A stretch of DNA of 64,000 bases. It comes from Orbicella franksi. Its lineage: Eukaryota. Each line of letters starts with the position of its first letter. The stretch's first letter is position 1. Under the pieces are notes generated by a model that saw only the letters and a list, made by a program, of their open reading frames with translations, was not told the DNA's origin and did not search any database. This document shows, in pieces, positions 34,821-35,099 of this stretch. The DNA lies in assembly GCA_964199315.1 (NCBI GenBank), contig OZ116702.1, positions 8,928,001 to 8,992,000 on the forward strand. Reading direction: 5' to 3'. Both the position numbers and the translations under genes were made by a program.

Positions 34821-35099
34821 TTAGGGTATTCTGTCTTTGACCCGCATCAAGATATTCTCTGAAAGCTGGAATGCCTGGTCAGCCATCTGGGCCGAGTAAA
34901 CTTCGTTTGGGATCTTGGGGAAGGACACCTGATCTGGATAACGCATGCGAGCCGAACGAACAACAAGTGTCTCCAAACCGCTGGCAAAGCTGATTAACTC
35001 GGAATCATTCAAACCACTGCAATTCTGAACCAAGTTGTGATCACTAGTCTTGTCAGCATGTATCATGTACTGAGCCGCCTTTAATGCCTTCTCTGCTGC
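34821..35099 (-). CDS. SACS: Copy 3 terminal exon 8, C-terminal part of the HEPN domain (92 aa)
   Basis: Acceptor CTGTAG|GCAGCA, phase 0 with the exon 7 donor CATCAG|[16 protein letters not shown] and RMRYPD are typical of sacsin-class HEPN. Confidence 0.9.
   Translation of the reverse strand, partial: AAEKALKAAQYMIHADKTSDHNLVQNCSGLNDSELISFASGLETLVVRSARMRYPDQVSFPKIPNEVYSAQMADQAFQLSENILMRVKDRIP

Follow-up and report, generated by a model that had tools for sequence, protein, structure and literature searches.

Variable patch and conserved tract in the HEPN exon of two tandem sacsin-like genes of the coral Orbicella franksi

A contrast between patch and tract in one exon

We analysed a stretch of 64,000 nucleotides of Orbicella franksi DNA (assembly GCA_964199315.1, contig OZ116702.1, positions 8,928,001 to 8,992,000 of the forward strand), referred to here as the window. 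Two tandem sacsin-like genes in the window, copies 3 and 4, differ in the last coding exon mainly within a patch of 37 codons, and are identical over an adjoining tract of 71 nt. This contrast between patch and tract is a real pattern. The explanation that we favour, with moderate confidence, is differential constraint within a single HEPN domain, combined with an unusually diverged 3' end of the two paralogues. The patch would then be mostly a weakly constrained surface, and diversifying selection on it is possible but unproven. The features to which we refer are as follows (window coordinates, all on the minus strand).

34364..34819, minus: copy 3 3'-UTR intron, 456 nt, TAAG/GTAAAT ... ACAG/G (RNA contigs)
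34820..35099, minus: copy 3 last coding exon, including the stop and 1 nt (PF05168, human sacsin HEPN 3O10, RNA junction)
34879..34949, minus: copy 3 invariant 71-nt run, codons 51-73 (exon alignment, human match, dimer model)
34956..35066, minus: copy 3 variable patch, codons 12-48 (exon alignment, omega, model)
35100..35491, minus: copy 3 intron, 392 nt, GT..AG (RNA contigs of two runs, loose ends 35101 and 35491)
35492..46753, minus: copy 3 giant exon/ORF, covering SACS repeats, a weak match to the J domain and HEPN up to its first third
37343..37345, minus: in-frame TAG of the assembly in copy 3 (paralogues CAG/CAA, Gln; four runs CAG)
61506..61785, minus: copy 4 last coding exon, including the stop and 1 nt (translation, PF05168)
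61565..61635, minus: copy 4 region corresponding to the 71-nt run of copy 3 (exon alignment)
61642..61752, minus: copy 4 variable patch, codons 12-48 (exon alignment)
61786..62230, minus: copy 4 intron, 445 nt, GT..AG
62231..64000, minus: copy 4 giant exon, 3' part, extending past the window to window-equivalent 73576

Alignment of the two exons reproduced the amino-acid differences counted in the initial annotation, with 14 in codons 12-48, none in codons 1-11 and two in codons 49-92, the last two being D74E and F77L. Codons 51-73 were indeed identical at the nucleotide level, synonymous sites included, over a run of 71 nt (34879-34949), and the coordinates assigned to the patch in copy 3 (34956-35066) and copy 4 (61642-61752) were exact. 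The patch had also been said to contain synonymous changes; 26 of its 111 nt differed, and the differences were purely synonymous in codons 26, 30, 32, 39 and 42. The assignment of the exon to HEPN held as well, with the variable stretch flanking a conserved H-N-L and the conserved tract carrying RMRYPD. Charge was altered by many of the replacements in the patch. Clustering of 14 of the 16 replacements in a 37-codon window was unlikely under uniform placement (scan statistic, p = 5e-4), and also when sites were weighted by their family-wide rates (p = 0.004). With all 37 differences placed uniformly, an identical run of 71 nt had a probability of 2e-4.

Organization of the sacsin-like genes

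Copy 3 contributes 92 codons at 34824-35099 on the minus strand, followed by the stop TAA at 34821-34823, and copy 4 contributes 92 codons at 61510-61785, with its stop at 61507-61509. In translation, the copy 3 exon matches without any difference the C-terminal end of 'sacsin-like isoform X1 [Orbicella faveolata]' (NCBI protein P0001), and it encodes positions 34-115 of the HEPN profile (PF05168). It scored 19 bits with this profile, and the upstream exon added 20.6 bits over profile positions 1-34; the copy 4 exon alone reached 25.5 bits, which is above the gathering cut-off of 22, and PF05168 was present in the spliced protein P0001. The intron of copy 3 divides the HEPN domain after C-H-Q.

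The giant ORF of copy 3, on the minus strand, comprises 3134-3136 codons depending on the ORF start that is counted, and its limit at 46753 is that of the ORF and not a mapped 5' exon boundary. SACS repeats were found in two stretches of this ORF (PF25794, E = 6.8e-163), together with a Hsp90-like ATPase match (HATPase_c_3, E = 1e-5). A stretch of 635 codons continues the ORF in frame; it matches HEPN profile positions 1-34 and, weakly, DnaJ, for which the scores of 17.1 and 13.6 bits were both under the cut-off of 27.8 bits. Copy 4 is laid out as copy 3, with an unbroken giant-exon ORF of 3789 codons. The N-terminal ubiquitin-like domain of vertebrate sacsin is often missing in aquatic homologues (bioRxiv 10.64898/2026.09.30.754977). 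The genes are sacsin-like, and the exon encodes the C-terminal part, amounting to the second half or two thirds, of a HEPN domain of the sacsin type.

Predicted structure of the HEPN domain

An AlphaFold model was obtained for the spliced domain (P0001:1764-1905) with 11 homologues; exon numbers equal model numbers minus 50. The model had a pLDDT of 81.6, with helices at 13-35, 41-63, 73-76, 83-96, 100-103 and 120-138, and its matches in the PDB were 3O10 (the best, TM 0.73), 1UFB (0.70) and 1WOL (0.69). The domain is thus modelled as an all-alpha, up-down helical bundle that can be superposed on solved HEPN structures. Prediction of a homodimer gave a score of 0.82, which may derive from the solved human structure 3O10, and the best of three controls gave 0.01; among proteins of solved structure, this mark was attained by 21 of 30 that form pairs of one chain, but by none of 23 solved as single chains. 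Contact agreement between the dimer runs was at least 95%, and the pLDDT of the partner at least 86.

The predicted interface consisted of model residues 14-54, 103-106 (RYPD) and 110-115 (FPKIPN). None of the predicted interface residues fell within model residues 62-98, which correspond to the patch; this segment runs from the last part of helix alpha2 through the alpha2-alpha3 loop, where the conserved H-N-L lies, and includes helix alpha3. The tract comprises R-M-R-Y-P-D, F-P-K-I-P-N and the beginning of the last helix, and its RYPD and FPxIPN motifs are conserved as far as human sacsin. In helix 83-96, conserved hydrophobic residues at exon positions 35, 38, 39, 42, 45 and 46 have the spacing expected for the core side of an amphipathic helix, and the replacements lie between them, at positions 34, 36, 37, 40, 41 and 44. 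Because of this helical periodicity, and of the list of interface residues in the predicted model, the patch is most likely an exposed face opposite the dimer pocket. In human sacsin, the dimerization surface of HEPN bears a positively charged nucleotide/malonate pocket (PMC4569058). The suggestion that the patch is an effector surface in contact with substrate was not borne out by the model, in which the tract and helices alpha1 and alpha2, and not the patch, form the predicted dimer and pocket face.

The motif R-M-R-Y-P-D reads R-x4-D, and does not match the Rx4-6H motif of catalytic HEPN RNases. An Asp in place of the His of Rx4-6H, with a conserved His elsewhere, has been described for part of the HEPN-T group (PMC3710099). 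In an alignment of P0001, P0025, P0043 and other sequences, several coral homologues carried C, H or G in place of the first Arg of the motif, and R-Y-P-D, the His of C-H-Q and the His of H-N-L were invariant. Given this variation in the first Arg, it is doubtful whether the domain has a canonical RNase centre, and a role as an RNase effector is unproven as judged from the sequence.

Divergence along the two genes

The genome contains 17 HEPN exons that are split by the intron and three that are unsplit, making 20 loci, and a second search of the genome with a divergent exon as query returned the same 20 loci and no further paralogues. Seven HEPN exons lie in one lineage-specific tandem cluster (C5, 8.76-9.02 Mb). 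A segmental duplication of 23 kb, with 98.8% identity, joins C5:8910628-8933661 to 8983174-9006199 (window 1-5661 and 55174-64000). It pairs copy 4 with a copy that starts 11 kb to the left of the window, the two being 100% identical over 3.3 kb around the HEPN exon, and is either a very recent duplication or a duplication in the assembly. The partial 'copy 2' (window 17167-21643) contains only 5' parts of a sacsin-like gene, and shares 86-95% identity with window 2759-5933 and 48583-52089. In the assembly of a related coral, a sacsin-like gene that belongs to the young subclade described below has a retrotransposon ORF (L054:1-1075; RVT_1, Exo_endo_phos) immediately 5' of it.

Alignment of copies 3 and 4 over 3874 codons gave a dN of 0.052, a dS of 0.136 and an omega of 0.38. 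Among non-overlapping windows of 37 codons, the patch had the second-highest pN (0.186), and its pS (0.425) was in the top 0.5%. Two other windows, 46394-46504 and 37904-38014 on the minus strand, had pN/pS values of 0.216/0.217 and 0.182/0.175, with a dN/dS above that of the HEPN patch, and the giant exon was generally fast over its first 600 codons (pN 0.08-0.14). Nucleotide divergence between the copies was 0.234 in the patch, 0.226 in the intron and 0.155-0.208 in the 3' flank; fourfold sites of the giant exon had diverged by 0.098, and fourfold divergence was uneven along the gene (p = 0.017). At neutral sites, divergence of the 3' end, comprising the intron, the HEPN exon and the 3' flank, therefore exceeds that of the gene body by a factor of about two to three.

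The tree of the final 1 kb of the giant exon placed copies 3 and 4 as sisters with 88% bootstrap support, and the alternative was rejected (AU p = 6e-6). Over the region that starts with the intron, copy 4 was closer to copies of other coral assemblies than to copy 3; a tree in which copies 3 and 4 were forced to be sisters on the intron and flank was not rejected (AU p = 0.17). The gene body has probably been homogenized between the copies by a process that did not reach the 3' end, and the mosaic signal at the scale of the whole locus is suggestive.

Selection on the patch

Selection was analysed with our own GY94-F3x4 likelihood code, and IQ-TREE gave exactly the same M0 fit (lnL -1290.74, omega 0.520, kappa 1.97). 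Between copies 3 and 4, the NG86 method gave a dN of 0.21, a dS of 0.63 and an omega of 0.34 for the patch, and an omega of 0.05 for the rest of the exon. Across 16 paralogues of this genome, omega was 0.29 in the patch and 0.21 in the rest (p = 0.10 for the difference), and an omega of 1 was rejected for the patch (p = 4e-15). A family-wide class with omega > 1 was not significant in a general discrete model (2dlnL = 0.4), nor did FEL detect any positively selected site across the family. Purifying selection was significant family-wide at 37 of the 92 exon sites, among them patch positions 15, 17, 18, 21, 23, 26, 30, 32, 33, 35, 38, 39, 42 and 47. In the wider family, the last helix (codons 74-92) was as variable as the patch, with a mean omega of 0.42 for each.

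On the terminal branches of copy 3, copy 4 and L005, all three of them young, omega of the patch rose to 0.85 against a background of 0.24 (p = 0.002), a value not different from 1 (p = 0.68), and the rest of the exon had an omega of 0.17. The maximum-likelihood estimates for the patch on young terminal branches ranged from 0.65 to 0.85 and were not above 1. A young subclade of 10 members was also analysed, with eight more exons from related coral assemblies; the exons of L053 and L054, cut by contig ends, were entered as partial data, and no contig location was found for P0006. In the subclade the patch varied in all 10 members and the C-terminal half was conserved, with an omega of 0.70 for the patch (p = 0.10 against 1) and 0.30 for the rest (0.66 and 0.35, respectively, by IQ-TREE). 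The last helix was conserved in the subclade despite its patch-like variability in the wider family, indicating that constraint has been redistributed and not merely relaxed.

According to the explanation that we favour, the tract (R-Y-P-D, F-P-x-I-P-N) together with helices alpha1 and alpha2 would form the predicted homodimer interface, and the tract would be held by strong purifying selection from coral to human. In the young subclade, the patch would drift at near the neutral rate (omega about 0.65-0.85), with positions 28, 37, 41, 44 and 47 being replaced repeatedly. Since the 3' end is more diverged than the gene body, weakly constrained stretches there stand out, and any such stretch would appear conspicuous in a comparison of copies 3 and 4.

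Alternatively, the distal face of the HEPN domain may be a specificity surface for a variable partner (a pathogen, an inhibitor, a client or a module of the protein itself), and the patch may diversify under selection, a possibility that deserves to be taken seriously but that we consider rather unlikely. Variation of the patch in every subclade member, with the remainder conserved, is consistent with such selection, as is the large number of charge-altering changes. In the subclade, comparison of models M1a and M2a gave 2dlnL = 6.96 (p = 0.031), with 12.6% of sites (p2 = 0.126) at omega2 = 2.3, and all but one of the seven candidates (sites 25, 28, 37, 41, 44, 47 and 74) lay in the patch. Sites 37, 41 and 44 are spaced i, i+4, i+7 on helix alpha3, sites 28 and 37 have also changed in further pairs of young paralogues within this genome, and site 28 was significant by FEL in the subclade (p = 0.019). 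In Acropora, a sacsin-like gene that has two ancient haplogroups is under long-term balancing selection (bioRxiv 10.1101/867754; PMC8626496). However, the site-class test is limited by fixed branch lengths, a poorly resolved paralogue tree and the 92 codons available; on five alternative topologies it gave p values of 0.0004-0.054, with poorer trees inflating the signal. The general discrete test was not significant in the subclade (2dlnL = 4.7), as in the family (0.4). Moreover, the patch is about as diverged between copies 3 and 4 as the intron (0.234 vs 0.226), and the patch of copy 3 was without variants in the four sequencing runs, for which contigs only were used. Diversifying selection, as initially proposed, was not supported for the patch as a whole, where omega was 0.29-0.85 and never exceeded 1, and survives as a borderline site class; this class, and site 28 in FEL, suggest that pure drift may be an incomplete account.

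Possible gene conversion within the exon

The initial annotation also proposed patchwork gene conversion. Under this reading, the tract would result from a short conversion that involved copies 3 and 4, or else the patch would have come from a more distant paralogue. The locus is dynamic, given the 23-kb duplication at 98.8% identity and the uneven fourfold divergence, and the change in affinity of copy 4 at the intron would also agree with conversion. Copies 3 and 4 had no silent difference over the 14.7 silent sites of the tract, whereas silent divergence in the remainder of the exon was about 0.42. Quartet sites of the patch were mostly private to single copies (7, 7 and 9), with only two common to copies 3 and 4. 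We nevertheless regard conversion inside the exon as improbable. The PHI test for recombination in the exon was not significant in any of four designs (p = 0.43-0.97), the trees of patch and non-patch regions were congruent, and no donor paralogue could be named for the patch; an import of the patch from a distant paralogue was rejected on the last two grounds, and the proposal of patchwork conversion within the exon was not supported. Copies 3 and 4 as sisters on the intron and flank were not rejected, as given above.

The silent identity of the tract was within chance. When only amino-acid-identical codons and their silent changes were shuffled, identity of the 71-nt run at silent sites was not significant (p = 0.058), and the absence of change at its 11 fourfold sites, compared with a local rate of about 0.2, had a p value of about 0.09. 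The tract differs from that of the next paralogue at about 5.7 silent and 4.3 replacement positions, by which family-wide constraint at the nucleotide level was rejected; the silent differences also imply that there is no general homogenization of the tract at the nucleotide level. The 71-nt identity is explained by amino-acid constraint and chance.

Transcription of copy 3 and the in-frame stop codon

We used contigs of two RNA and two DNA coral runs from four studies (X14, X9, X1 and X4). The exon-exon junction 35492/35099 was present in RNA contigs, so copy 3 is transcribed and spliced. A second splice, from 34820 to 34363, was seen in RNA contigs, with its donor 1 nt after the stop; the exon, initially called terminal, is the last coding exon only, and is followed by an intron in the 3'-UTR. 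The stop-plus-donor sequence (TAAG/GT) is conserved in related corals (L048-L051). No variants were found anywhere in the copy 3 exon across the contigs of the four runs.

The TAG in the assembly would shorten copy 3 by 728 codons, and four paralogues have CAG or CAA at this position. At window position 37345, A was replaced by G at full depth in all four runs, which gives CAG, and the TAG at 37343-37345 is either an assembly error or a rare allele. Decay of copy 3 as a pseudogene, in which this in-frame TAG, where four paralogues have Gln, would leave the HEPN exon untranslated and free to change, is highly improbable and was rejected for the samples examined, in view of the CAG reads, the correctly spliced RNA, an omega of 0.12 outside the patch on the copy 3 branch (p = 0.01 against neutrality), and copy 4, which has an intact ORF and as many private changes in the patch (7 and 7).

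Comparison with known systems

The HEPN domain of human sacsin (PDB 3O10, residues 4441-4579) has the same fold as the coral domain (TM 0.73, 30% identity), and is likewise C-terminal, following SACS repeats and a J-like domain, the latter represented in the coral protein by a weak match. The two share (T/M)RYPD..FPxIPN(D/E), the human sequence being TRYPD..FPQIPND, and the coral domain is predicted to form a symmetric dimer through the same kind of surface. Human sacsin is a single gene, whereas the coral domain, interrupted by an intron after C-H-Q, occurs in a family of 17 split and three unsplit copies. The alpha2-alpha3 loop and helix alpha3 are the least alignable with the human protein, and phmmer aligned only exon residues 36-88. 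With respect to HEPN-T (PF05168; Anantharaman et al., 2013, PMC3710099), R-x4-D of the coral domain matches the variants with Asp in place of His; however, the MNT partner is absent in the coral case, and the first Arg in corals can be replaced by C, H or G.

The Acropora gene also contains Hsp90-like, J and HEPN domains, and has high, long-lived diversity with many replacements. That diversity is allelic and peaks between the Hsp90-like and J domains, with no paralogue detected, whereas the contrast described here is between tandem paralogues and lies in HEPN, with no allelic variation in the four runs. Immune families such as the LRRs of NLRs and the v1 region of TRIM5 resemble the coral genes in being tandem, recent duplicates with replacements on a probably exposed face beside a conserved core, and in having charge-changing substitutions that recur at few sites; the coral patch differs in that an omega > 1 is not demonstrated. 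We found no description of a hypervariable HEPN patch in sacsin-like genes in the literature searched.

Implications

Coral sacsin-like genes have often been flagged, for balancing selection in Acropora and in heat and immune responses. A bolder proposal, which we hold to be doubtful, is that the distal HEPN face diversifies by recurrent positive selection, and that the merulinid sacsin array is a stress- or virus-responsive family of receptors or effectors in which the dimer pocket is kept invariant. The locus provides a map of the domain, with a conserved, predicted dimer and pocket face set against a fast-changing and probably opposite face, among young paralogues and related corals. Should the site-level signal not be upheld, the pattern would represent differential constraint in a duplicated gene, and would caution against inferring selection from two copies alone. 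If the signal is upheld, it would point to a partner-binding surface, and copies 3 and 4 would be a natural pair of variants for binding or RNase assays.
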